DNA of 63,351 bases, the filler included, from Pelomyxa schiedti (taxonomy: Eukaryota; Protista; Evosea): NCBI GenBank assembly GCA_020536535.1. It is 5 parts of 5 records of this genome, joined end to end, with 100 filler letters (N's around TTAATTAATTAA, not from the genome) between each part and the next. Parts side by side here need not be neighbours in the genome. Positions count along the whole stretch, not along the records: positions 41,400 to 57,081 come from JAHLWZ010001151.1; 4 more parts are not named here. One strand, given 5' to 3'. The position numbers and the translations under genes were made by a program. Below, one piece after another: positions 40,845 through 57,408 of the stretch; within the stretch, counting starts at the first letter, position 1, and the number at the start of each line of letters is the position of its first letter. The notes beneath the pieces are model-generated. The model was not told the origin of the DNA. It did not search any database and saw only the letters and a program-made list of their open reading frames with translations.

Positions 40845-42264
40845 AAAGATGGAATCGTCGCCAACCCATACCACAGGATTTTTAACCCATTCCCTCATTT
40901 TTGGCCATGATGAGGGAGAAAGAGAAAACCTGGTGTGAGGCAGCAAACTGGGGTAAATACAAAAAAGACCAGTTTCCTGAGTGACAACAAGAAACACATG
41001 TGATGGTGACACACGACGTTCAGAACGAAACCATCTTTTTGATGGTTTTCGGCGTCTTGTCAAAAAAAGCTGTTTTTTTTTGGAATTCCAAAGTCACAAC
41101 AGGCCTGTTGGTGATGGTGGTGGTTGTGAGGGAGAGGAGGCAGAAGGGGGTGTGGAGGATGTTATTGCAGGAGCGAGTGACGACAGCCACTGCGTGATGG
41201 TGTGGTCCACTTGGTCCCGTGTAATCACACTCGCAAGAGTTTCTTCACTTGGTGCGGAGGAGGAAAGTGCAATGGAAGCTGATGTGCAGCAACAATGCAN
41301 NNNNNNNNNNNNNNNNNNNNNNNNNNNNNNNNNNNNNNNNNNNTTAATTAATTAANNNNNNNNNNNNNNNNNNNNNNNNNNNNNNNNNNNNNNNNNNNNC
41401 ACTCGTGTCCCCACACCCGTTGCACCGTTCCCCTCACCCACGGCCGTCGTCACTGTGCCTGCACCCATCTCTGCCCCCATTTCCGCACCACCCGTCATCG
41501 TGGTCGCAGCGGTTGCACCCGTCCCCACGGCCGCGATACCCACAGTCACACCCGTTGCCATGGTTGCACTTGTCACAGCCCCCCTCATCGTGGTTGTTGT
41601 TGCTCCCGTTGGTTTGTTGTGCCCCATCACTGGTTTTTTTTTTATTTATTTATTTATTTTTTTTTTAAATCCTTCGTACCAACCTTACAGCTCCCACAAG
41701 GTCCGAAGTAAGCCCATTGTGATTGCCTATGACAAAGGAGCAGGACCAGACCTTTCCGAGTGTGGAAAGTAACGTAGGCACTGACCCCAAAAAAAAAAGG
41801 GCGGAGGTTTTTCCAGGAATCTGAGAGGAAAAAAAAACCTCCGCCCATTGACCCAGATATGTAGTGATCCCAGGTCCGGAGACACCCTGGACGTGACGCA
41901 GTCGGTTGCCCACCGCTGCAGAGGAACGAAGAAGAACCTCTGCGTCCGGTGGCAATAACCCCACACGAGCCTGATTGCCAATGACGATGGACTTGTCGTG
42001 CACCATGATGAGGAGGAGGATGAGTTGGACCCATCACCACCACGATACCACGGAGCGCCACAGCAGCGGGTGTGACATCAACAGCCACTTGTAGCTCTCA
42101 CCATAAGGAAGCAATCACTGAGAAAGTGCCACACAGATCTCTGCCCTGTACAGAACGTCGCAGGGAGGCCTTGCAGGGCGCATTTGCTTTGCTGTGTTGC
42201 CAAAATACAAACATAGTTCGAGTGAATTGAAGCATTTGAGGAAACAAGTAGTGTTGTACACTAT

Positions 42265-45200
42265 CTAGCTGGAATTGTGGTCTGAATTTTCCGGGTCACT
42301 GCTGGAACTGAGGCTTTCCATCTCTATTTCGTCTGGTTTTGGTCGAGGCTTGTGCCTGTGCTCATCTTTGTGCTTGTGGTGTCCGTTCCCATGATGCCGG
42401 TGGTGCGAACTTGACCTGCGCTTGTTTTTGTTGTGTCGGTGCCTGTGCCGGTGCCTGTGTATGTGATGATGGGATTCCTTGCTCTCTTGTGTCTCGTCCA
42501 AATCTGCCAGCATAGACTTCAACACTGACACGATCTTGAAGAACTCGGGCCTGTGGTTGGGGTTCTCGTCCCAGCATTGCCTGATGAGATCCGCGTACTG
42601 CTCAGGGCAGTCATCTGGTATTATGGGACGCATGCCAGACGACACTTTCTGTGGAATTTCCCAAACTACAGTGTCAGTCCAGGGCTCTTCATGTGTCCAC
42701 ATTTGGTGAAGACATGAGCCCATGCTATATACGTCCACCTAAAAGTTCCTTGAATCCAAGGGGATGGGTTTTTTATGTGGGAGGCTGTGTACCTTTGTAT
42801 TGTACATTTTCGTGGTAAAATACTCTGGGGCCTTTTTTTTGTGGGGGGGTTATCATGGTGTGTTGGAAGAATGTTAAACTACCATGTAAATCAAGGTGCC
42901 GGCTCGATTTGTGTACTTACGCACGATTTCAGGATCATCTATATGCCTTGCTGTTCCAAAGTCTTTTGCTTTCTTAGTTACCAAAAACCTTTAAGTGGTA
43001 CATACCACAAAGCTTGCACGTCACTTGAGCTTCCGGCAGTGTTGATACAACAAGCACGTTTGAGCATTTCTTGGGAGTGTTAGATAATCATTTGTACGAC
43101 TGAAAGGTACTAAATCACGGTAAATGAAATTGTTGCTATGAAGATAAGCCACCGCTTCTGCAATGTTGGTGGCAAATTTAAGCAGGAGAGAATACGGGAT
43201 ATCAACTCCGGACGTGAGAAACTTGCCCAAGTTTCCATTGGGAATAAGTTCGGTGCAAATACAAAGTTTTCCTTCAAGGTATTCTAAACTAGGAAGAGTA
43301 TTGAGAAATCAAACCTGGTACATAACAAGCGCCTATGTAGCCCTGTGAATATCAGCTTGAATTAGGGAGTAAACAAGCGCTTACCACAATATAAGGGTGG
43401 TGAAGTCCAGCCATGACATCACACTCATTGACGAATTCATTCCTTTCACACTCCTGAAGGTCACCTTGGTTTTTCAAAACCTTTACAGCAATAATTTGTG
43501 CCCTGTATCGACCTTTGTAAACTGACCCAAAGGCTCCAGATGCTATTGGAGCTGTATGCAACTGTCAGAAAAAAGAGGACACCAAAAAAATCACCTGGAT
43601 CCAGCTTTATCTCAGCGGGATCAAGCCTTGTAGATAATGCCCCATCAAGGTTGACATCAAACAGTATAGGTTTGCCCATTGTTATACCGATGTTGTCCAG
43701 AACATCAAGTTTGATTGGTAAAGTGAAATGGGTGGTATACATAAGGCAAACTTTAATGCTGACTGTGATTGCACTTCCAGGATTTATAACGCCTCGGCCT
43801 GGTCTGATGTCGAATTGTACTGTGTCCGGAATATCAGGTACACTGAAGATAAATGATATAGGCTTTTTTTTTGCGGAGAGTGTAATTCTATCCTCTTTCC
43901 ATTCCAGAATAGGTGTTTTTACTTTTGAAGAGTTTCCAAACGCCAACACAGTGTGGTTTACTTCCACATTGTACTCTTTAAGTAATCCTTGTACTTCAGC
44001 CTCATCAAAATGTAGGCCTTCAAATTCGTTGGGAGGGGTGAACTGGGCAGGTTCATTTAAGGCAGATAACTTTTTGGCCCGTTTCTGTTTAAGCCAGCAC
44101 CATGAGAAGATAGTGACCGCCGTACACACTAGTGCAAGCACTACAATGCCCATTATGGCAGTAAATACTCGTCCCAATATTGGCATTTCCCTTCGACTAG
44201 TTTTGTATTGAACAACAAAACCCGTTCCTGCAGTGGCGTAATCAGCCTGCAGAACAAGTGCAATTCTTTTAGATCGTATGCTCAGGGGAGTAGCATTCAG
44301 TCCACTGAGAGACGTAATCAATCCATCAGGGGGTAAGTTGGAAACTGAGTTAATTTCTGCATCAGGTTCGATACGATATATAGATAAGCTGTCAGAGTAG
44401 TCAACTGAGAAAGAAAGGAAGTCCAAATCAATGGTCCAAAAATCTCCTGGGGGAGTGATCATCCAGATACAAGATGTGGAAGGTATGTATGTGCGGGACT
44501 GCTCGTGTTCGGGAAGTGGATTGTCACTCTGGAGAACACCACTAGAATTGAATACTTCATGAAACCCGCTGCAACCGCGGGAGCAGTCAAACCAGAAATG
44601 GGAGTCCAGACAAGAGCAGGTTGAAGTATCTACGTTACACTCCCCATATCCGAGTTCCGAGTGGCAGGTATTTGTTTTGTCCTCTCCGCACTCAATGTCT
44701 GTGAATCCGCAGCTGCCCCAATCTGTGACCCATAAATCCGGGAAATGGAACGAAAGAAACTAACCCTTAATTATAAACGGAATAGAAAACAAAGAATACG
44801 ACAGAGAATCTGATTCACGAGTATTAGTTATTCACAGCACGAATATCAAGGCATACCAGAGGATACATCAACTTGATACAGACCTGGCCAGAGAAACATA
44901 TTTGCAGTCCTGTTTGATGCACTAATATCGCTATCTCTTCCTGGGTCGTTTTCAGCCAGTGCAGAAGTTGTCCAAGTTGAGAGAAACCGCCACTCGGGAT
45001 GATAATGCCAAGTTAAATCAAGAACTCCATACCAGGCATAGTTAACTGCAAGTATACCCTCTATGTAAGCCCTGCAATAGTGTAAGTAAAAAGAGAAGGC
45101 AAAAGAGCATTAACGGTATGAAGTATGAAGCAACTAATTGTTCCTGAGGACATATTTCAATTTTCGCAAGTTCAAATTGGATAGCACAGTATGTACCGGT

Positions 45201-45886
45201 CCAAGTGCCATTGCATAAACATTCCCCAAGGAGATATTCGCAAACGCCACCGTGGTCTCCACAGTGAGAGGAACACCCTGGCAAAGCACATTCCCAGGCG
45301 AGAGAGGCACTCAGTATGCTTGCGTTGAATGAGTCCTGATTGAATTCCAAGCCGGTCAAGGCAAGATACAGATCCACAGATGCAGTGAAAGCAGCATCAC
45401 AAACAAGAGAGAGTACAAACGAGGAGGGATCACTCGAAATTACTCCGGTTCCCGGCGCATCCAGGGTGAATTCTGTGGCCCCAACATTCTGGCCATCAAC
45501 TGTCCCAGCAGCTTCCGTGATTCCAAGTGAGGCAAACATGCTATAGCTTACATTTGAGTGACCAATTGAGCTGCTGTTCCACCACCAAGTCATTGTCACA
45601 TTCTGTACTCCAGCAGACACAAAAGAAGGTTTTCTCTCATAGTGGTTCACTGTGGCCAAGAAAGGTTCCTGCACCTCTCCACAGACTATGACGTCACCCA
45701 CAACCTCCTGAGTGACCATTCCCACAAATAAAACTATTAGAACCCTATCCATCCAACAGAACAACAACATACATTGGAGTCGTAGTCATAGTAATGGGCC
45801 TGGATGTTCAACCCACAATCGCGGGCGAGCGAGTCCCCATTAAACACACTTAGCAGGGAGAACACGGCGAACAACGGCCAGTACAT
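42265..45886 (-). CDS. Receptor-like transmembrane kinase: signal peptide, EGF-like, CUB-like, TM, TKL kinase, His-rich tail
   Basis: MYWPLFAVFSLLSVFNG signal peptide. CGDHGGVC...CLCNGTWTGTYC (EGF-like). CIWMI...LQADYATAGTGFVVQY (CUB-like). TM VFTAIMGIVVLALVCTAVTIFSW. Kinase GAFGSVY, AVK, YRDL and DVYSMG. Confidence 0.88.
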
Positions 45887-45969
45887 CGAACTGAACTTGT
45901 GATTGATGGGGGCAGGGAAAAACCTCAGATTGATTTCCCCTAACTCCAGGATGAATCAGAAATTGAGCG

Positions 45970-45977
45970 TCCCATAA
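45970..45977 (+). promoter_or_regulatory. DUSE-like element TCCCATAA
   Basis: Matches WCCCAYAA. Lies 61-63 nt before a structured element, close to the spacing at the U1 genes. Confidence 0.5.
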
Positions 45978-46030
45978 GCCTCCTCACAGGAAACTCCTGA
46001 TGGCAATCACACATACCAAGGGAGAAAAAT

Positions 46031-46180
46031 TACCCTCACCATCGGATGGCGCTGCGAATTGATACTTTGTAACAACTCGTATGATACTCCTCTTCATGTG
46101 GAGCCAATGATGTTACAAAGTGGAATCACGACTAAATTGATACCAACCACAGCGATTGGGACCGACACCCTTTGAGGGTA
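46031..46180 (+). ncRNA. Candidate unidentified structured ncRNA (~150 nt)
   Basis: Nested stems TACCCTCA/TGAGGGTA, TCGG/CCGA, CGCTG/CAGCG and ACTTTGTAACA/TGTTACAAAGT. DUSE-like motif upstream and T-rich 3' flank. Intergenic. Confidence 0.5.
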
Positions 46181-46388
46181 AGTTCTTTGTTTTTATCTTT
46201 ATTTTTATTTGTTTTTTGATTGTTAGTTGGAATGTTTGGTGATCCGAATAAAACAATTGGTCATTAGAGGAACAAACAGTGTTAGGGAAGTGCCAAAAAC
46301 ACAATTGGGTGGGTGTTTGTAGTGGTGTTTGTCTGGGGCACCACCGTTGTTGGGTTACATTTAAGAAGGTGGTGGTGGTTTGTGCTTA

Positions 46389-49300
46389 TTATGTTTTGGA
46401 GTTGATTGTTGGTAGTAGGTCAATGGTGGCAATAAAGGGTGGCCTGAGGGCCATCTTGGTGGCCCAGCATGCTGTGATAAGGTCTCTCCATTTGGCAGTG
46501 AGCTATTGAAGTGGTAAGAATGAAGCTGGCGATTAAGAATTCGGGGAAACTACCCCAGATGGAAGCGGGGGTCTCTCGTCAGACACAAGTATTTTCTGGG
46601 TTATCTAAAGGCAGCTAATTAGTTGCTAATTTGGGGAACAGGAATCATACTTGCTCTTTAGTGAGTCCAGAGAAAGGTACTTTGCCGCTGACCAGCTCAT
46701 AGAGTATAAGGCCATAACTGTATACATCAGCCCTTTCATCATACTCCTGACCACCAATCATTTCGGGTGGCATCCACTGCACATGCCCCAAAGTGAATAA
46801 AGAGATCATTCAATCAAATAATTGTGAAAGGCTGGGTGAGATACAGCAAAAGTGCCAACAGCTCCAGTGAGAACAGCATTTTCAGACTTAACCCGTGCTA
46901 AGCCAACATCGCATACCTTGCAATGTTCACCTTTTTCATCCAGGAGAATGTCTGTACTTGGTTAAGTTAACGCGTTTGTGACCTGTCAAAACGTACTGGC
47001 ACTTTTCAAGTCTCTATGGATGATGGGGGGTTTACTGTTGTGGAGATAAGCCATTGCTTTGGCCATATCGAGTGCAAAAGTTTGGCGCTGTTGAGGTGAC
47101 GGAATTATCCTTTTCTTGTATCTATGTAACCAATATTGATTAAATAAGAACTTTCGTTCAAGAACATACAACAAGTCAAAGAGGCTACCACCAACCATGA
47201 ACTCGGAAACCTGTTTGGGACTATCAACGACAATAAAAGTATTGAAGTCTCACCATAGCAAGAACCGGGGCTATAGATGCGCCAAGGAATAGAACGAGCT
47301 GTGGGTGATGAAGAGAGCGCAGGATGCTTACTTCCTTCGAGAATATTGCAATCTCTTGGGGGGACGCGGTGTCTCCACCCTTTAGAGTCTTGACAGCAAC
47401 CTCTGTGCCTCTCCAACGACCTCTGAATACCTTTTCCACAACTTAGTTTGATTGTATGGCCAAGTTGGGCATACCCGTCCAAAACCACCTTCCCCAATTT
47501 GGTCCTGGAGCTCTAATTCGCTGAAGTCGATCTGCCAGTTTGGACGTTCGTTCTTAAGATGATCAAGACGTCTTTGTGGTTTCAGTCAGGTGGTCAGATT
47601 AAAGATTATTATTATATTGTCTGTCACCTTTGGGCTTCCAAATGGCGCTCTTTCCTCTTCAATTCTTCCTGTGCATGTATCATTTTTTGCAGTCTCATAA
47701 ATGGAATACTTGTTTTTTTTCTAATTCTAGTTCGGCCTCATGCAGTGCAATAATTTTCTCTTGTAAAGCTTGGTCTACATTTGTCTCCCCAACCGGAAAT
47801 ACTGTGGTAAGTCCTCCTTGCATTCCCAATTGCACACCCCCCAAGACTCCTGGCTGCATCATGATATTAGGCTGTAGTCCACCCATTGCTTGCATTCCCA
47901 TCATAGGTCCAATCCCTCCTTGAGCAAACTGCATTTGTTGATACAAGAGTTGCTGTTGAGTGAGTTGAGGAGGTTGTTGGGCAAGCTGGTGATGTTGTTG
48001 GAGGAGTTGTGGAGGTTGTGGTGTTGGTTGAGTTGATTGTGGTGTGTGTTGAGGTCGTGATGAAGATTGTGGTTCGGTGGTTTGTGCTGGGGGATCTGTC
48101 GAAGTTGCGGGCAAAGCTGGGGCATCAGGTTTTTTCCACTGTGTAGAATTAGGATACAGGAGGAAGGAGAAAAAGAACCTGTGACTTCCTTGTATGTACA
48201 TTTACATAATAATATTTTCCAGACACTTTATCAAACCCAAGCTTCCACCCAGACGGAAGGGTTGCCAAATCGGGGTGTGCAGAAGGGGGGCTTGCACTTG
48301 CTGCCGCCGTTCCATTAGAAGCAGTCGTTGGTGTTACAGAGCCAAGTGGTGTGACAGGTGGAATAATAAGAGCAGGTGTTGTCGATTCCGGTTTGTCTTT
48401 CTTTCCCTGTGAAAATCAATAAAAATGAGTTCTAAATTGATGGCACCATGTACAGAAGAAAGGTGAAGTCTTTTTTTGGCTGCATATAGGAATCCCTTGA
48501 AATTTTTATTAGTAACACGTCAAAGTTACACATAGGGTTCGGTGAATTACATGCTTTTTCTTATCCTGAATATACATTAGAAAGATGTTAATACATTTAT
48601 AAATCAATGTTACCTCTTCAACAACCTTGACGGCAGGTGTAGATGGGGTCTTGCAGAGAAAAGAAGATTTAGAGAAAGTTTAAAATATTTCTAATTACCG
48701 GTGTGTTGTTGGAAACTGTTTCAGAACTGGACTTTGGAGTGACCTGGTGTTTTAGTAAGATGATATAGAGAGGACTGGGTAGACCCTAAAAGCAACCTCA
48801 TTATATGGGGTAGCTCCTGGCACTCCAGGGAGTGGGTGCGTGTCGGAGACTGCCAGAATTACAATTTGAGATGCAGGGACAAGCCCTTTTTCCTTGCCTA
48901 GAATTCCCTCGATCCAACCTTCCTTGTACACAGATACAAGATGAATTTTATCTCCCTTGTTGAATTCCAACAGTACGTCGTTACCTGAGAGGAAGACAGG
49001 TGAGGACACATTGCCACTCCCGAAGTACAACAACTTGCCTCGTTGGTCTTGAGTTGCCTTTCCCTTTAGGAAAAAAGACTCCATTGAGCCCTCCTGAGTC
49101 GCTTCAGGGATTTCAGCGGATAGGTTCATAAATTCGGCATTTTCTATAAGGAGCCGTACAAACATATTCGCAGCATCTCGTTGCAGTGTGGGATTTTGCG
49201 GTGCGGGTGATGGAGCAGAAGCTCCAGATTGTGAATGGGATGGAGGACGGAGGAAGAAGGGCATGAATACAGAAACAAGGGTATCGAGTTGTATCCCTGT

Positions 49301-51626
49301 TGCAGACAAAAATGCACACAGTTTACATATGATACTCCGAGGAATTGGAGGCAGCTTGATAATAAGAATGCGAGCTTGGTGGGATCTGTGTGCTGTATGT
49401 GGTATACAAGCTATCCGCAATGCTAAGGTTGTAAGAACGTTGTTTCAATTCTCTTCAAAGAGGGAAGGAACCTGTATGGAAGTAACTTGGTGGCACAAGT
49501 GGGTGCGGCAACATTTTTAAGTATAATATAAGAACAGCAGCTACAATCTATATGCCAAATCAGTGGATAACCAGAAATCTGCGCCATTACTTGTGGAGTG
49601 GTAACAGCATCTATCGGTGAAGGCATTGCACTTGTTGAATCAAATTCTTCCAAAGCCACTTTAAGCCTTTGAACGTCAGGGTGGGTTGTGTCCATGGAGA
49701 AAAGCTCATCTCGGTTGACTGTATCTTTGCTTAAATACTCAATGCATTTGCTTATTACATATGGCATAGTGGAGCCTGGGATTACTGCCTGTGCAAGGGT
49801 TCGTCCAAATTCATTCTGATATTGACGAAGGTCAATGAGGAAAAAAAAAAAGTTGCTGTGTGGAATACAAAACGGACCACAGATTTTTTGATGGGCTCTT
49901 CAACTGGTGTGGACGTGAGTGGAATATCTTGGGGGGAGCAATGTTCTTGGGGAGTAGCAGGAATTGTAGGATCGTTTGGGGCAGTATGTGTAACGGGCAC
50001 TTCAGAGGATAGATTTGGCTTTATCTCAATGTTGTGAAGAGTGGGAATTGTGATTGGAGAAGAATGTGGTGAGTCATAGTGTGCTATTCCAGGTATTGCT
50101 TGTGGAGAAGTCCCTAAAGAGGTAGCTAATCTTGGCTCAGTATCAACTGAAATGGATGCAAAAGATTCCACCATAGATCCAGATTCACTGCTTGACACTT
50201 TACTCTGCAGATCTTAGTAGGGGAGGGGAAAGAAATGACATACCTCTTCCAACTGGAGTTTAGAGGAAGATGACAAATTATCTGGTGAACACATTGAGTG
50301 ACTGGTGATTATTTCCAACTTACCAATCAGCATTTGTTGTAGTTTCTTGTTAGCACAGGATAAAGGCGTTCTGCCTGCACTGTTCTTGAGAGATTGGTCA
50401 GCTCCATGTTGAATAAGGAACTGAGATATTTCAAAATGATTTAAGCGACAAGCAATATGCAGGGGAGTGTCCTGTAATTGTGTTATTGAAGACAATGATA
50501 AGGGATTATACCATCTACAGAGTGTATTGGTGTGGAACAAAGAAAGAATTTGTATCATTGAAAGTAAAATTGGAAGAAGGAACATACTCTCTGCACTGTG
50601 GTGAGAAGAAGCAAGGAGAAGAGAAAATACCGGCTGCACAAAACCAGGGTAAATGGAAAAATATGAAATCAGTTCCAAAACACAGATAGATAGGTTTATT
50701 CATGATGTATTAATAACAGAAAACTTGAAGCATACCCCCTAGAGAGGGATTAAGATGAAGAAGGAGTTTGAAAGGCCTACATTCTAAAAAAGAGTTAGAT
50801 TGAAAAAGAAATTTAGAGAAATGACCTTGAACTACACAAAAAGTGTGGGAGCAAATTATTTTGGTGTCAAATGATTGTCAATTTTGTATTCTTGGTTTTT
50901 GTTTGACTTTTTTTTTGTGGAAAGAGTGTTGTGAATACCCACTACCGAAGTTAGAAATGTTTTTTCCAGGGAAAAAAAACTTGCTTACTTGCTAAAGTTG
51001 TCCCAATAGATGGAGAATGAAGAAAAAAGAGAAGAAAGAAGTTAAATAGAGGAATATAGAGAATATGATGACTCACATCCTGATGGATAGTGAAAAGGAA
51101 TATGGGAGTAAAGTGAGGTACACACAGGCTACACAGGGAAAAAATGAGTTACAGTAGAAGGAGGAAAGTTAGACTCAGCAAGTAAGGAGGGATGAATAAA
51201 CAGAATAAGTGATACCAGCTGTAACCACAGTTAGGTTTCAATAACCAAATTGCATTTGCACACCTGCTACTTGATGTTAATTCAAGAAGAGAAGCACAAT
51301 AAGAATAAGAAGAAGACGAAAGGGGACAAAAAAAAAAAAAAAAAAAATTTTTTTTTTACAGTGTTCAAGTTGTCACCCCTAGTGATGCAGGCGAGTATCT
51401 TCTGCAAGTTATTCTTCTGAGCATAAGTGTGCAGAGCGTAAGGGGGTGAATCCAGCGCAGAGGCGTCACTACACGCGCTGCTGCCGTCGTGGTGATCGAC
51501 GCACGCCACGCCCGTGCTGCCACCGCTACTACCGACGCCCGCACCGCCTCCACCACCACCAACTACGCACGACGCAGATCCCGCCGTTGATTTTACGGGA
51601 GCCACTCCCGTAGTGAACGTTGCCAT
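46389..51626 (-). CDS. Ankyrin + RhoGAP-like + SH3 + WW + TKL kinase multidomain protein
   Basis: DTPLHIACRLNH (ankyrin). MPYVISKCIEYL (RhoGAP). LEFNKGDKI...GWIEG...GLVP (SH3). LPSGWKLGFD..GKYYYVN...TQWKKP (WW). Kinase VAVK, HRDLKS, CDVGLAR and APE. Confidence 0.85.
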
Positions 51627-51855
51627 CCGTGTCGATGACGAGTTCCCTGAAACTGGCTGATGATCGGTTCCGGGAAGAAGATCCCTCTCTGACTAGGCAG
51701 GTGTGTAAGTCCCTCTGACGATCAGAGGGTGTGGGTAACATGAGGAAACTTGAGGTGTGTACCAGTAGGATGCTTGGCCGGATGCACACCTTGAAGATTC
51801 GCCTTCGTTTCGGGCACAGTTGCGTGTAGATATTAATTAAAACGCGCCGTGGTGC

Positions 51856-53371
51856 ATGTCTGGGAGAGGGGGCAAAGCCAAGGGCAAGGGCAAAGCAGCC
51901 ACGTCGGCATCCGCCGACATCAACAACGGCAGCGCCAAGAACAAGAACAAGAGCAGCCAGAGGCGCGGGGGGGCCCGGGCCCAGGCGGTCGCGGACATGA
52001 GCGACGCCGACTCGTCGGCCGGGGAGGAGGCCACGAGGAGGGAGGCGGGCAGGAAGCGGCGCAGCGTCGACACCACAGCGGAAAAGGAACGCCTGGTGGA
52101 GCGCGAAATCCGTAAATCGTGGGTTTCTTTTTTTCTTTTTTTTTTTTTTTTTTTTTTTTGGTGGTAGTGGTGCTGGTGTTGTGTGATTCCACAGAGAAGG
52201 TTATGGGATGCTCCTTGTATTGGTGTCCTTTTGGTGTCCTTTGTGGGTTCCATTTGTTGGTTGTTTTCTTTGTGTCTTACGGTTTTCTTACAGAGGAAAA
52301 GGCTCGCCAAAAAAAACGAAATCTGCCCGTCCAAAGATTACATTAACGAGTTACACTTGCACGGCATTCCGTAAACACCCTACTGAAATTCAAAAGGGTG
52401 ATGGCAGGAAACTGAAGCTTATTCACGCTGGTTATTTACCCAGTTCCACATTTCTGACTAACTTTGAGACTTTCTGGTGTCACCTACAGTTATCAAGCAA
52501 TTCAAGGAACGAGAGGATAGGGATCCAACACTCCTTGCCCTACATCGAATTGCAATCGGGAAAATAACCAGGAAAACTAGTATAAAGGTATCTTTGCTAA
52601 ATTCTCCCTTACAGGGGTTCAATTTTGTTGTAGGCTAATCTTCTTGGATTCAGTGGCCTTGTATATGGGGCTGAGATGACGAAAGAATCCGTGGAAACGA
52701 GCCTGAAAGCCTGTTGTACTTCACGTTTACAGGATATGTGTACAGTGCTAGGGATCAGCGCAGAGGGCTCCAAGGGCGATCTTGTTAAGAAGTTGGTGAA
52801 CTTTCTGGAGAAACCAAAAGGATCAGCATACAGAGAGAGGGATCCCGAGAGAGACAAAGCGGAGAAACGCAGAAAACGGGAAGAATCCCAACCCCCACCG
52901 GCTGCTAGGGTTAGTGATTCAGGCTTGTAGAGTCATCTGCACTCACCCTTTGTATAGAAAGCCAAGAAACTGCGCATATCTGGGCCCATTACCCCGTTTA
53001 TTCTGTTCTCTCAGGAAGTGAGGTGATTATGCACGAGTGTTTTTATCATTGTTAACCTTCTCATCAGGGATGGAATGAAGGCGCAATTCCCGTCCATTGG
53101 ACCTGTTGCCCTGGCTAAAAAAATCTCCGATTTGTGGAGAGGCATGGATGATCAGCAAAAGCAGCGATGGGAAACCCAAGCAGAACAAATAACTGGCAAG
53201 AAAGCAGTGAAGGAGCGAGCTGAGATAGAAGAAGAGAAGGAAAAGAAAAAGAAGGAAGCACGGCTTGCTGCCATAACTAGAAGACGGGCCAAACGTGATG
53301 CCAAGAAACCCGCCCCAAGACCATCATTGACTATGGGCAAAAAGAGAATCAAAATGCCCAAAAGAAAGTGA
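51856..53371 (+). CDS. DEK-like (SAP-type) chromatin protein with a C-terminal HMG box
   Basis: LLALHRI...IKANLLGFSG...RLQDMCTVLGISAEGSKGDLVKKLVNFLEKP is DEK-like. PITPFILFSQEVR...AKKISDLWRGMDDQQKQRWE is an HMG box. Confidence 0.75.
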
Positions 53372-53602
53372 TAGCACACAACCCCCAGTCTTATTGTTGT
53401 CAAGTCTTTTTTTTTAACAATTTTTCGCGGCCACAACTTGTCCGAAATTCGACCAGCCACTTGGCAACTTGGGTCCGACAAGATAATCTCCAAAACATTC
53501 CCAGAATCGACACCCCGTTTGGAGCAGCACTTGACACACCGTCGCACCGAACGTTGTTGTCGCACAACCCACTCAGCGGCTTCACCTCGCCAAATAGGAG
53601 AA

Positions 53603-54903
53603 ATGGCTGCTGCCACTGCGTTGCACATGTATGGTATGAGGTGCAGCTCTTTCCACACCTTCCCCTCTCACTCCTGGAAAGAGGAACCGAGTGGCATCTT
53701 GCATATAATTGTTAATAACAAAGAGTACCGCGCCAATGTCAGAACTGACTGTTTATCGCCCTTACGGTGCTTGTGCTTGTTCTTTCTTTCTTTATGGTCA
53801 TTTTCTTTTCTTACTTTTGATGTCAACAGCCCCAGCGCCTGTAGTTCTGTTTACAAAGTAACACACAACAATCATATATTTGTGGCAAAAATTATCAAAA
53901 TATCATCCGCATCACTTCAACATATTGTATCACCTGCCGAAGGAAAGAGGCACAAAAATTTACTAGAGCTACTGGATGTAGGATGGAACCCGGAAGCAAT
54001 TTGTTTAATAACGGAATAGTGCGTCATTTCGCCCTTGATGCATTAGTAATAACTACTGCAGCTGTGCTGGGGGTGATCTTTACCACTTCATCCGTGTGAA
54101 TACTGACATAGAGGAAGACATTGCTGCAGAGATAGTATTTCAATTAGTCGCTGGGCTTTCATTCTTGCACTCCTGCAATATTGCCCACAGGTTGCTTACA
54201 AGCTAATTTAACAGCAACGATACATAAATTCTTCACCCGAACGCTTATTTAAAAAACCCAGGGATATGAAGGTTCTACTTTACTTCCCTGCCCTCATCGC
54301 GTATCATTCTCACTTTATTGCAGCCGGCTAATGTTCTACTGTCTGAAGATTACAAGATAGTGAAAATTGCGGTTTCCACCCACACTTAGAGGAGCTACTG
54401 TAACTTGTTCTGTAGGACTTCGAAATGTCCAAGATTCTTCAACTTGATTGGCTTACCACTTTATGTGGAACCCCTGGTTATATGGGTACTAACCTCTTCA
54501 CCATCAATAAATTCTAATAAATTTTAGCACCGGAGGTGTTAGGTGGGCAATACGATTTAAAGGCGGACCTTTGGGCGCTTGGTGTTATTACATACAATCT
54601 GTATGGCCATCTCCAAGTTCGTTCAAAGTTAATTTCTTGCCACACAGGTTGTTTAGGGCTGAACCTTTCGAAGGGACAACCGTGGAAGAGATAAACAGAA
54701 ATGTGCGGGCATTCAACATCAATAAACCACCCAAGGGTGTTAGATCACCAGCAGGTATTCTCCAAATATTAAATCACCTTAAACAACACCAAAAAGCAAC
54801 TGCCTTCATCTTCTCCTTACTGGTACCTCTTGCTTCAAGGCCTGATGCAAAGACGACTTTGAAACACCCCTGGCTCTCTAAAGCTGTTTGTAGAAACTAT
54901 TGA
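53603..54903 (+). CDS. CAMK-like Ser/Thr protein kinase, divergent
   Basis: VAKII, HKNLL, GGDL, AHR/DMK/PANVLL, DFE (for DFG), CGTPGYM/APE and DLWALG across micro-exons. Confidence 0.8.
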
Positions 54904-55041
54904 CATCACCTCTTCTCATTTCCTTTATAGAGAATTAAGCTCAGAAACACTATCTATGCCGGGCATTAATGCCACACCTTGCACTGCTAATGCCACACAG
55001 TGTCAACACAAGAATGGAATTTTCTTCGTTTTTTGTTTCGT

Positions 55042-55179
55042 GTGGGGTTGCGCATTTCGCAGACCCCGCTCCAAAAATAGTGTACTAGATATCCCCACCT
55101 CTGCCCAGAGTGCAAGAGAAAAGGTGTTGATACACAAGGCACCCTTGTTGATCAGTGCCTGTGAGTACTAGGTAAGTTT
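55042..55179 (-). ncRNA. U1: U1 snRNA, canonical 5' end (AAACUUACCU), lacking stem-loop III
   Basis: Reverse complement shows AAACTTACCTA, helix H GTACT/AGTAC, SL1 loop GATCAACAAG (U1-70K site), SL2 loop TTGCACTC (U1A site), Sm site ATTTTTGG and SL4 GGGGTCTGCG-AAAT-GCGCAACCCC. Confidence 0.9.
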
Positions 55180-55234
55180 GAGATTCGAGTTCCGGTAAGG
55201 GGGCGGACAACGGAGACAATATTTCGTTGGACGA

Positions 55235-55254
55235 TTATGGGTCGTAACCCATAA
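55235..55254. promoter_or_regulatory. Palindromic pair of DUSE-like elements (TTATGGGT-cgta-ACCCATAA), bidirectional snRNA promoter
   Basis: The two ACCCATAA elements begin 63 and 64 nt upstream of the two U1 5' ends. This matches the Dictyostelium DUSE consensus WCCCAYAA and its ~-63 position. Confidence 0.85.
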
Positions 55255-55310
55255 CTGCCGTTGTTCTGCGGGCACCCTTTTCTGCGAGTGGTCAGCCTGG
55301 AATCGAACTC

Positions 55311-55449
55311 ATACATACCTAACTGTGCACACCGTTGATCAGGAAGGACTGGTGTGCTGTTGTGGCTTCTGACTTTGCACTCAAGTCTGAGACCACGATA
55401 TCAGCAGTGGAATTTGTTTAGTAGGAGTTTGCGTTTTGCGCAACTCCTT
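55311..55449 (+). ncRNA. U1: U1 snRNA variant with AUACAUACCU 5' end, lacking stem-loop III
   Basis: ATACATACCTA, helix H ACTGT/GCAGT, SL1 GCACACC...GGTGTGC with loop GATCAGGAAG, SL2 loop TTGCACTC, Sm site AATTTGTTTAG and SL4 AGGAGTT...AACTCCT. Confidence 0.9.
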
Positions 55450-55651
55450 CACAAAGATAACAGAACACGGCCATTTGACGGAATAAAAAAAACCCAGACC
55501 GCCAATCATGAAATCCGCACTATTGCATTCACGGAAGTGGGGAAAGGAGAAAAAAAATGACAACGTGGGCACTTCGTTGTTCGTCCATCACTTTTAACGA
55601 GGAGATGCAACAAAAAACAAAACAAATAAAAAAGAAAAACAACACAACTAA

Positions 55652-56268
<617 letters not shown>

Positions 56269-56733
56269 TTAGACTGAATTTATCTCCAATCATCGTGTAT
56301 TTAATGTTCTCACTTGTGTGGGAACACTGTCAATGTAAAAAAAAAGTATTTCCTTCCATGTTAAACCTATTACTACCGGAGGTATTATGACGTGGTATTA
56401 TTGTGTTTCTTGGGGTATGTGTGGAAAAGACCCAACCAAGTAGTGGGAGGTTCCAATGAGGGAGACTTTGGATATGGGACTGAATCCTCCAACCACAGGG
56501 TTTCAACATCTAGACCTAGTTTTACCCAGCCAGATTATGATGGAAGAAGTTCTGCCCAGTGTTGTGGTTTTGTTTTTTGTTGCATCTCCTCGTTAAAAGT
56601 GATGGACGAACAACGAAGTGCCCACGTTGTCATTTTTTTTCTCCTTTCCCACTTCCTTGAATTCAATAGTGATTCAGATTGGCGGTCTGGGTTTTTTTAT
56701 TCCGTCAAATGGCCGTGTTCTGTTATCTTTGTG

Positions 56734-56872
56734 AAGGAGTTGCGCAAAACGCAAACTCCTACTAAACAAATTCCACTGCTGATATCGTGGTCTCAGACTT
56801 GAGTGCAAAGTCAGAAGCCACAACAGCACACCAGTCCTTCCTGATCAACGGTGTGCACAGTTAGGTATGTAT
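56734..56872 (-). ncRNA. U1: Second copy of the ACAUAC U1 variant
   Basis: Reverse complement of 55311-55449, with its own ACCCATAA starting 64 nt upstream (56929-56936). Confidence 0.88.
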
Positions 56873-57408
56873 GAGTTCGATTCCAGGCTGAGCACTCGCA
56901 GAAAAGGGTGCCCGCAGATCAACGGCAGTTATGGGTTACCCATAATCGTCCAACGAAATATGGGTAAATAAAAAAAACACCAGACCATCGGGTTTCTAAA
57001 GTTTAGGTTTTGTTGCTAATCACAACAGATTCGATTAGATCGGTGCACATCAAATTCAAAGAATAAGAGGTGATCGAATCGNNNNNNNNNNNNNNNNNNN
57101 NNNNNNNNNNNNNNNNNNNNNNNNNTTAATTAATTAANNNNNNNNNNNNNNNNNNNNNNNNNNNNNNNNNNNNNNNNNNNNTTTTGGTGCGAGACGCGGG
57201 TGCCAGGGTGACTACCGGCGCAGCTTGGCGCCGCCTGTGCCCTGGTTGCTTGTGACCCGAGTTATGGGAAGGCATCGAGCACTCCAACAAAACATCGGCC
57301 CGTTTGCGTGTTGGTAGGTCGAACGACATCAATGTGGGTTTTTCAGGGAAGAACGAGTACGTAAAAATTTGGGCGCTGCGGTACGGGTTGTGCACCATGA
57401 AATCCAAA

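Follow-up and report, generated by a model that had tools for sequence, protein, structure and literature searches.

Two head-to-head U1 snRNA genes of reduced fold, with different 5' splice-site recognition sequences, in Pelomyxa schiedti

Does an organism that carries two kinds of U1 snRNA use them for two kinds of 5' splice site? The wider question is whether natural U1 variants steer the choice of 5' splice site. Saccharomycotina yeasts switch between A and U at donor position +4 while their U1 and U6 sequences stay invariant, METTL16 and SNRNP27K being linked to the switch (Parker et al., PMC10581693), and human variant U1 snRNAs, for which an effect on splicing has been proposed, are recent and very rare in spliceosomes (PMC8457000, PMC13172311), too rare to decide the matter. 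The question is raised anew by Pelomyxa schiedti, in which two old, equally conserved U1 genes differ at the base that pairs with donor position +4, and both corresponding donor classes are common in the genome. The pair comes from contig JAHLWZ010001151.1 (15,682 bp, taken whole; assembly GCA_020536535.1), which occupies positions 41,400–57,081 of the window, i.e. of the entire 63,351-nt stretch of DNA that was analysed.

The two U1 homologues, hereafter A and B, are 139 nt each and lie head to head, their starts separated by 131 bp (table 1). The RNAs begin with AAACUUACCU (A) and AUACAUACCU (B), and the portion complementary to the 5' splice site (ACUUACCU in A, ACAUACCU in B, one change) is single-stranded. 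Both carry a GAUCAnnAAG loop on SL1 (U1-70K site), the SL2 loop UUGCACUC of the (A/U)UUGCAC type (U1A site), and helix H, an Sm site and SL4 in the expected order. The original prediction had recognised the two protein-binding loops, the Sm site and SL4, and had overlooked that SL3 is gone: 26–27 positions of the RF00003 model are replaced by 3 nt between SL2 and helix H, and the folded junction is three-way rather than the four-way junction of U1. The search with the Rfam U1 model that had been proposed as a check did return U1 at both genes, the sole Rfam family listed at these positions, with scores under the gathering score of 69.5 bits. A, B and a further copy, C, fall below this cut-off because SL3 is replaced by 3 nt, and A and B are filed here as reduced U1 homologues, not as canonical members of RF00003. 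An identity as U11 was ruled out, as Rfam keeps U1 for all three matches and both U1 protein loops are present. Like U1 and U11, A and B would be two paralogous donor-recognising snRNAs of one cell (P. schiedti has approx. 90 minor introns; PMC10639083); unlike U11, each of them has both protein-binding loops of U1, for U1-70K and U1A, and its 5' end is of the U1 type.

Table 1. Features of the U1 locus and its surroundings; positions are those of the window.
Feature	Position	Strand	Evidence or remark
U1 paralogue A	55041..55179	(-)	RF00003 51.6 bits, E 1.4e-10; fold z -3.2; 139 nt, without SL3
A recognition sequence ACUUAC	55177-55172	(-)	
U1-70K binding loop of A (SL1), predicted	55144..55153	(-)	Rfam match and fold
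U1A-protein binding loop of A (SL2), predicted	55107..55115	(-)	Rfam match and fold
Sm site of A, AUUUUUG	55072..55078	(-)	sequence and Rfam match
Proximal element directly before A (GGAACTCGAATCTC)	55180..55193	(-)	
DUSE-like box for A, at -63	55235..55242	(-)	consensus and distance as in PMC3188802
DUSE-like box for B, at -64	55247..55254	(+)	sequence
Proximal element directly before B (GGAATCGAACTC)	55299..55310	(+)	
U1 paralogue B	55311..55449	(+)	RF00003 54.8 bits, E 1.7e-11; fold z -2.9; 139 nt, without SL3
B recognition sequence ACAUAC	55313-55318	(+)	base backed by DNA contigs in runs X1 and X2
U1-70K binding loop of B (SL1), predicted	55337..55346	(+)	Rfam match and fold
U1A-protein binding loop of B (SL2), predicted	55375..55383	(+)	Rfam match and fold
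Sm site of B, AAUUUGU	55411..55417	(+)	sequence and Rfam match
Copy C, identical to B	56734..56872	(-)	Rfam U1 match, 139 nt, E 1e-10 to 1e-11
Inverted duplicate of 55219-55623	56567..56961	(-)	sequence comparison and X1/X2 contigs
Kinase gene	53603-54969		one flank of the U1 pair
ARF1 gene	55679-56268	(+)	other flank of the U1 pair; outside the U1 system
ARF1 intron	55916-55965		donor GUGUGU

As had been proposed, the stems of the two RNAs have diverged strongly and still fold alike. Independent folds of A and B have 24 base pairs in common at the same coordinates, of which 14 are changed on both sides, six on one side and four not at all, so that 20 pairs are changed yet still paired; in helix H (12–16/94–98 in both RNAs), four of the five pairs are changed on both sides. 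Identity between A and B is only 15/53 (28%) at paired positions, versus 27/34 (79%) at unpaired ones. When the 55 letters by which B differs were shuffled (1000 trials), shared pairs averaged 0.5 with a maximum of 12, and none of the trials reached 24. Taken together, the shared pairs, the contrast between stems and loops and the shuffle control indicate that the duplication is old and that both copies have been under purifying selection, which a pseudogene would not show. Both genes are very probably functional. Human variant U1s are likewise altered paralogues, but in Pelomyxa the divergence runs deep and the stem changes are compensated in either gene; the pair offers U1 RNAs that are conserved without SL3. 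No placement of the Pelomyxa U1 genes in a tree was obtained, U1 sequences being too short and the branches long.

A DUSE-like box (ACCCATAA) begins at -63 from A and at -64 from B and C, in agreement with the distances originally given. Dictyostelium snRNA genes carry the DUSE, WCCCA(Y/W)AA, approximately 63 bp upstream (PMC3188802, PMC7919456), and although conservation of this box or of its distance outside the Dictyostelia was not expected (PMC7919456), Pelomyxa shows both. Given how densely the box occurs in 216 kb of Pelomyxa DNA from elsewhere, the probability that it falls by chance in an 11-nt window before both genes is approximately 6e-6. A putative DUSE-type promoter, recognised by sequence and distance, extends to the Archamoebae. 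The two boxes stand back to back with CGTA between them; what had been described as a palindrome reduces to two outward-facing boxes, and the proximal element before both starts had escaped notice. This element (common form: GGAA(C)TCGAA(T)CTC) is absent from 216 kb of further Pelomyxa sequence, and its B version, read as the reverse complement, resembles a Pol III B box. In D. discoideum, snRNA genes are also found as divergent pairs. That A and B might be co-regulated is a guess from their proximity.

The assembly was presumably made from amplified single-cell DNA, and window positions 52170–57081 were compared with four runs of one study, all as contigs: two DNA runs (X1 and X2) and two RNA runs. 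The variant base, A5 of ACAUAC, is backed by raw-run DNA contigs: an X1 contig matches 56692–57081 without differences, through the variant base in copy C, and an X2 contig matches 55163–55321 exactly, the entire A–B spacer included. The second copy of B had been offered as further support for this base and loses that role, not being independent. Indeed, long contigs of both DNA runs depart from the window at 56578, in a 12-nt T-rich overlap with the inverted repeat, and copy C may thus be an allele joined on by the assembler; the inverted duplicate as a whole is either such a joined allele or a real duplication. Copy C has both DUSE boxes upstream (56929–56945), without a partner gene A.

The spacer varies between the runs. 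In X1, the DNA upstream of A departs from the window at 55222, just past ATAT, which parts A from its DUSE and leaves the window's A–B junction absent from this run; the sequence beyond is identical at 18 of 30 positions to that following ATAT at 56961, and the X1 allele of A also differs next to the Sm site. A repeat inserted at an ATAT target site could account for these contigs. ATAT occurs at both ends of the inverted duplicate, with related flanks containing CCAGACC (55219–55222 and 56958–57081), and the X2 depth of approximately 1200 at 56926–57081 fits a repeat there; together these features suggest that a repeat or DNA transposon ends here and is inserted in the spacer in X1. X2 contains more A-to-B joints with other spacers (55182 to 55299, rejoining the window exactly at the start of the B proximal element; 55197 to 55288, lacking both DUSE boxes), an A variant of greater depth, and additional A-type copies whose Sm-like site is intact. 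In a B-like contig of this run, the sequence turns at 55401 into an 18-nt hairpin, precisely where SL3 would stand, and a third, SL3-bearing U1 type may therefore be present in that sample. Among the X1 contigs, no extra joint, deeper A variant or SL3-bearing B-like contig of this kind was found. Both DNA runs have B-type sequence at greater depth than A-type sequence. Five introns are confirmed by the two RNA runs, which contain no contig over the U1 genes; their libraries may not capture snRNA, and this absence is weak evidence against expression. Elsewhere, approximately 168 kb of other Pelomyxa loci held no further snRNA gene at the Rfam gathering threshold, which would miss genes like A and B, and a pattern search of other Pelomyxa loci gave no U1.

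Computed duplexes bear out the preferences that had been read from the two 5' ends. The strongest partner of A is GURAGU and that of B is GURUGU, by a margin of 3–6 kcal/mol (GUAAGU: -10.8 versus -8.0; GUAUGU: -7.0 versus -12.4, for A and B, respectively). The donors against which these preferences were set number 533, of which 89 belong to annotated introns, placed by exact spliced alignment of nine Pelomyxa proteins, and 444 to introns predicted from known gene ends and protein lengths by a model blind to intronic donor letters; five more introns came from RNA. In leave-one-out testing the model had a precision of 73/84, a figure that is probably too favourable because it was trained on paralogous genes; in the window genes that it covered, it recovered all four donors verified by RNA. 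AAG is a frequent intron end in Pelomyxa, at times following an A-run, and intron length is mostly 40–60 nt; one GC donor occurs among the 89 annotated introns.

Pelomyxa donors are degenerate, with +5G in 38% and no hexamer above 3.4%. Both classes of interest are enriched, about equally (GURAGU: 24, 9.7x; GURUGU: 31, 8.9x), and GURCGU (9, 3.9x) and GURGGU (3, 2.5x) less so. Position +4 among the +5G donors is U in 103, A in 59, C in 22 and G in 21; this share of U (50%) is above the level expected from base composition (p 1e-4) but equals the UG dinucleotide background (p 0.89), which makes +4 a weakly constrained position. For 127 donors pairing with A is the stronger by 1 kcal or more, for 116 pairing with B, and the remaining 290 lie within 1 kcal; the two RNAs together lower the proportion of weakly paired donors from 26–30% to 23%. 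Covariation of +7 with the A2/U2 difference was null (p 0.83), the predicted +7A preference of B-type donors having failed. Two complementary U1s would predict that both donor classes are enriched, as observed, and a choice driven by U6 would fit this too; the donor data are compatible with a division of labour.

Among relatives, the claim that ACUUAC is near-universal in U1 proves weaker than stated. U1 reads ACAAAC in Entamoeba and ACGUAC in Mastigamoeba balamuthi, U1 and donors having changed together in both, and Physarum polycephalum has standard and ACAUAC candidates, 'to be presented elsewhere' (Roy and Bowser, bioRxiv 10.1101/2022.06.08.495308); several other eukaryotes, described below, have ACAUAC genes. 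Entamoeba and Mastigamoeba are Archamoebae like Pelomyxa, with a U1 change opposite donor +3/+4 that matches their donors, but each has one reported U1 type with four stem-loops, whereas Pelomyxa keeps the canonical sequence beside the variant; Entamoeba, moreover, has A-rich DNA and no DUSE upstream of U1, in contrast to the DUSE-like box of Pelomyxa. The archamoebal series thereby gains a third state: ACGUAC, ACAAAC and now ACUUAC plus ACAUAC. Physarum is likewise an amoebozoan with both U1 types, and has common GUAUGU donors where Pelomyxa has no dominant hexamer; its two U1s were mentioned without gene arrangement, promoter or SL3 loss. A literature search, outside which most subscription journals lie, found no paper on Pelomyxa U1 genes or on multi-specificity arrays.

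A pattern scan of metagenomes for ACAUAC-type U1 gave 36 matches, many of them near-copies from few lineages; 29 look like real U1 genes (22 confirmed above the Rfam cut-off), and seven were set aside by eye as chance (L009, L019, L020, L029, L033, L034, L043). Genes with ACUUAC and ACAUAC lie close together in nine loci. Scans of viral contigs gave no variant and six canonical pattern matches, none of them U1 by Rfam, and so provide no baseline for the frequency of the variant. Loci L010/L023, L013 and L017 we take to be plant-type, from the land-plant box TCCCACAT at about -73. Plant-type ACAUAC U1s (L010:8812-10348, L013:6944-7753, L017:2-1121, L016 and L024) stand beside a canonical U1 in three loci. 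One clade (99/97) unites four of the plant-type ACAUAC genes, which suggests that plants conserve a U1 subfamily with this sequence.

A second set (L022, L040, L031, L032, L036) belongs to one protist lineage, apparently marine; at -56 to -59, most of its genes are preceded by a CCCATA(A/G) box similar to the Pelomyxa DUSE at -63/-64. L031 and L036 carry ACGUAC besides ACUUAC and ACAUAC, and L032 holds ACAUAC, ACUUAC, ACUCAC and ACGUAC within 2.3 kb; the compact arrays with three or four recognition sequences span L032:240-2060, L031:224-1440 and L036:418-1425. The ACAUAC genes of these three loci, which score below the Rfam cut-off, were called by pattern and motifs. Paralogue classes group across L031 and L036 (95/95 for ACAUAC), and in L017 and L032 there are signs of separate origins or of gene conversion. 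The two-U1 state has precedent and recurs, and the Pelomyxa pair is not unique; the marine arrays may even be the better finding. The paired metagenome loci are tandem arrays, and all of them retain SL3, unlike A and B; the back-to-back DUSE pattern was found only in Pelomyxa.

Other U1 contexts were met in the same scan. Dense clusters of U1, U2, U4, U5, U6, SRP, 5S and tRNA genes occur in L035 (38 tRNAs), L028, L037, L042, L012 and L018, where ACAUAC is the sole U1 type seen; U6 keeps ACAGA where it was read (L012, L026, L028). The stretch L021:906-3882 holds an animal-like ACAUAC U1 of 152 bits, with U2, a 5'-truncated second U1 and a histone stem-loop nearby, and a putative tRNA-Val at L008:4412-4484 has the T-loop GAUCGA in place of GUUCGA.

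In our favoured reading, A and B would be functional, anciently duplicated U1 genes whose fold is reduced to a three-way junction (helix H, SL1, SL2, Sm site, SL4), each probably driven by its own SNAPc-type DUSE box, back to back in the spacer. Both RNAs, once expressed and capped, would assemble into U1 snRNPs with an identical set of proteins (Sm ring, U1-70K and U1A). Differing mainly at nucleotide 5, opposite donor +4, A (U5) would favour GURAGU and B (A5) GURUGU, and together they would widen the early recognition of very degenerate donors, by overlapping preferences rather than by a strict split. We regard such a division of labour, with both RNAs in U1 snRNPs biased to one donor class or the other, as a proposition whose chances are evenly balanced. 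The original two-U1 proposal keeps its constrained paralogues and their different pairing; both donor classes are enriched, and linked ACUUAC and ACAUAC genes do recur in unrelated eukaryotes, with classes kept across L031 and L036. The joint change of U1 and donors reported for Entamoeba and Mastigamoeba and the two variants of Physarum also speak for it. Against a division of labour are the RNA runs in which no contig lies over either gene, the weak constraint on +4, the null result at +7, the small drop in weakly paired donors, the yeast precedent and the interrupted spacer between A and its DUSE in X1.

Several of these points would suit U1s that are both functional but interchangeable, a reading that we consider somewhat unlikely. 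A Psi-U or A-A mismatch at +4 would be tolerated, the mixture of A and U there would be set later by the U6 ACAGA box (m6A state, METTL16, SNRNP27K), and both genes would be kept for dosage or stem differences. The behaviour of +4 and +7 favours this account, as do the 290 of 533 donors that A and B pair with almost equally and the yeasts that switch +4 with invariant U1 and U6 (PMC10581693). However, several lineages repeat the change from U5 to A in a gene next to a canonical one, on two or more occasions within the plant-type set; each of the four variants of L032 is complementary to a plausible donor; and archamoebal U1s track their donors.

It is decidedly unlikely that the pair reflects a replacement in progress or stage-specific use (cyst versus trophozoite), with B as the main U1 and A minor or stage-restricted, or the reverse, and a spacer that is a relic of inverted duplication without co-regulation. 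A main U1 of type B would agree with other archamoebae, with U as the commonest +4 base and with the greater depth of B-type sequence, and the X1 allele of A has no DUSE context and differs beside the Sm site; yet A retains every loop, its stem pairing and a DUSE at -63, X2 has more A-type copies with the Sm-like site intact, and GURAGU donors are as enriched as GURUGU donors. That one gene is a pseudogene, or that the variant base or the head-to-head join is an artefact of assembly or amplification, is most improbable: the amplified DNA, the lack of the A–B junction in X1, the doubtful join of copy C and the scores below the Rfam cut-off would allow it, but for the variant base and the fold it is largely refuted by the compensatory evolution of the stems, the exact X2 contig across the spacer and the X1 contig across the variant base.

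Beyond Pelomyxa, many eukaryotes could possess a repertoire of U1 snRNPs with different bases at positions 4/5, selected like tRNA isoacceptors and dividing the donors of the major spliceosome; cases would be the SL3-less, jointly promoted Pelomyxa pair, plants (two types) and the marine protist lineage (three or four types per array). This generalisation is tentative, although the plant-type and marine loci suggest that the arrangement recurs, and plants would make testing practical.

Next to the U1 pair, the idea that U1-B and ARF move as one unit was ruled out, as six other ARF loci have no U1 nearby. Many near-identical ARF1 genes occur in P. schiedti, and they share a conserved motif, ATGACAACGTGGGC..TTCGTTGTT, a possible hairpin approximately 120 nt upstream of the start codon (window 55545-55623; L045-L048, L054). 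An A-run plus the motif CCAGACCGCC is common to the ARF upstream region (55481-55511) and to an intergenic stretch (L050:4194-4223), possibly as a promoter element.
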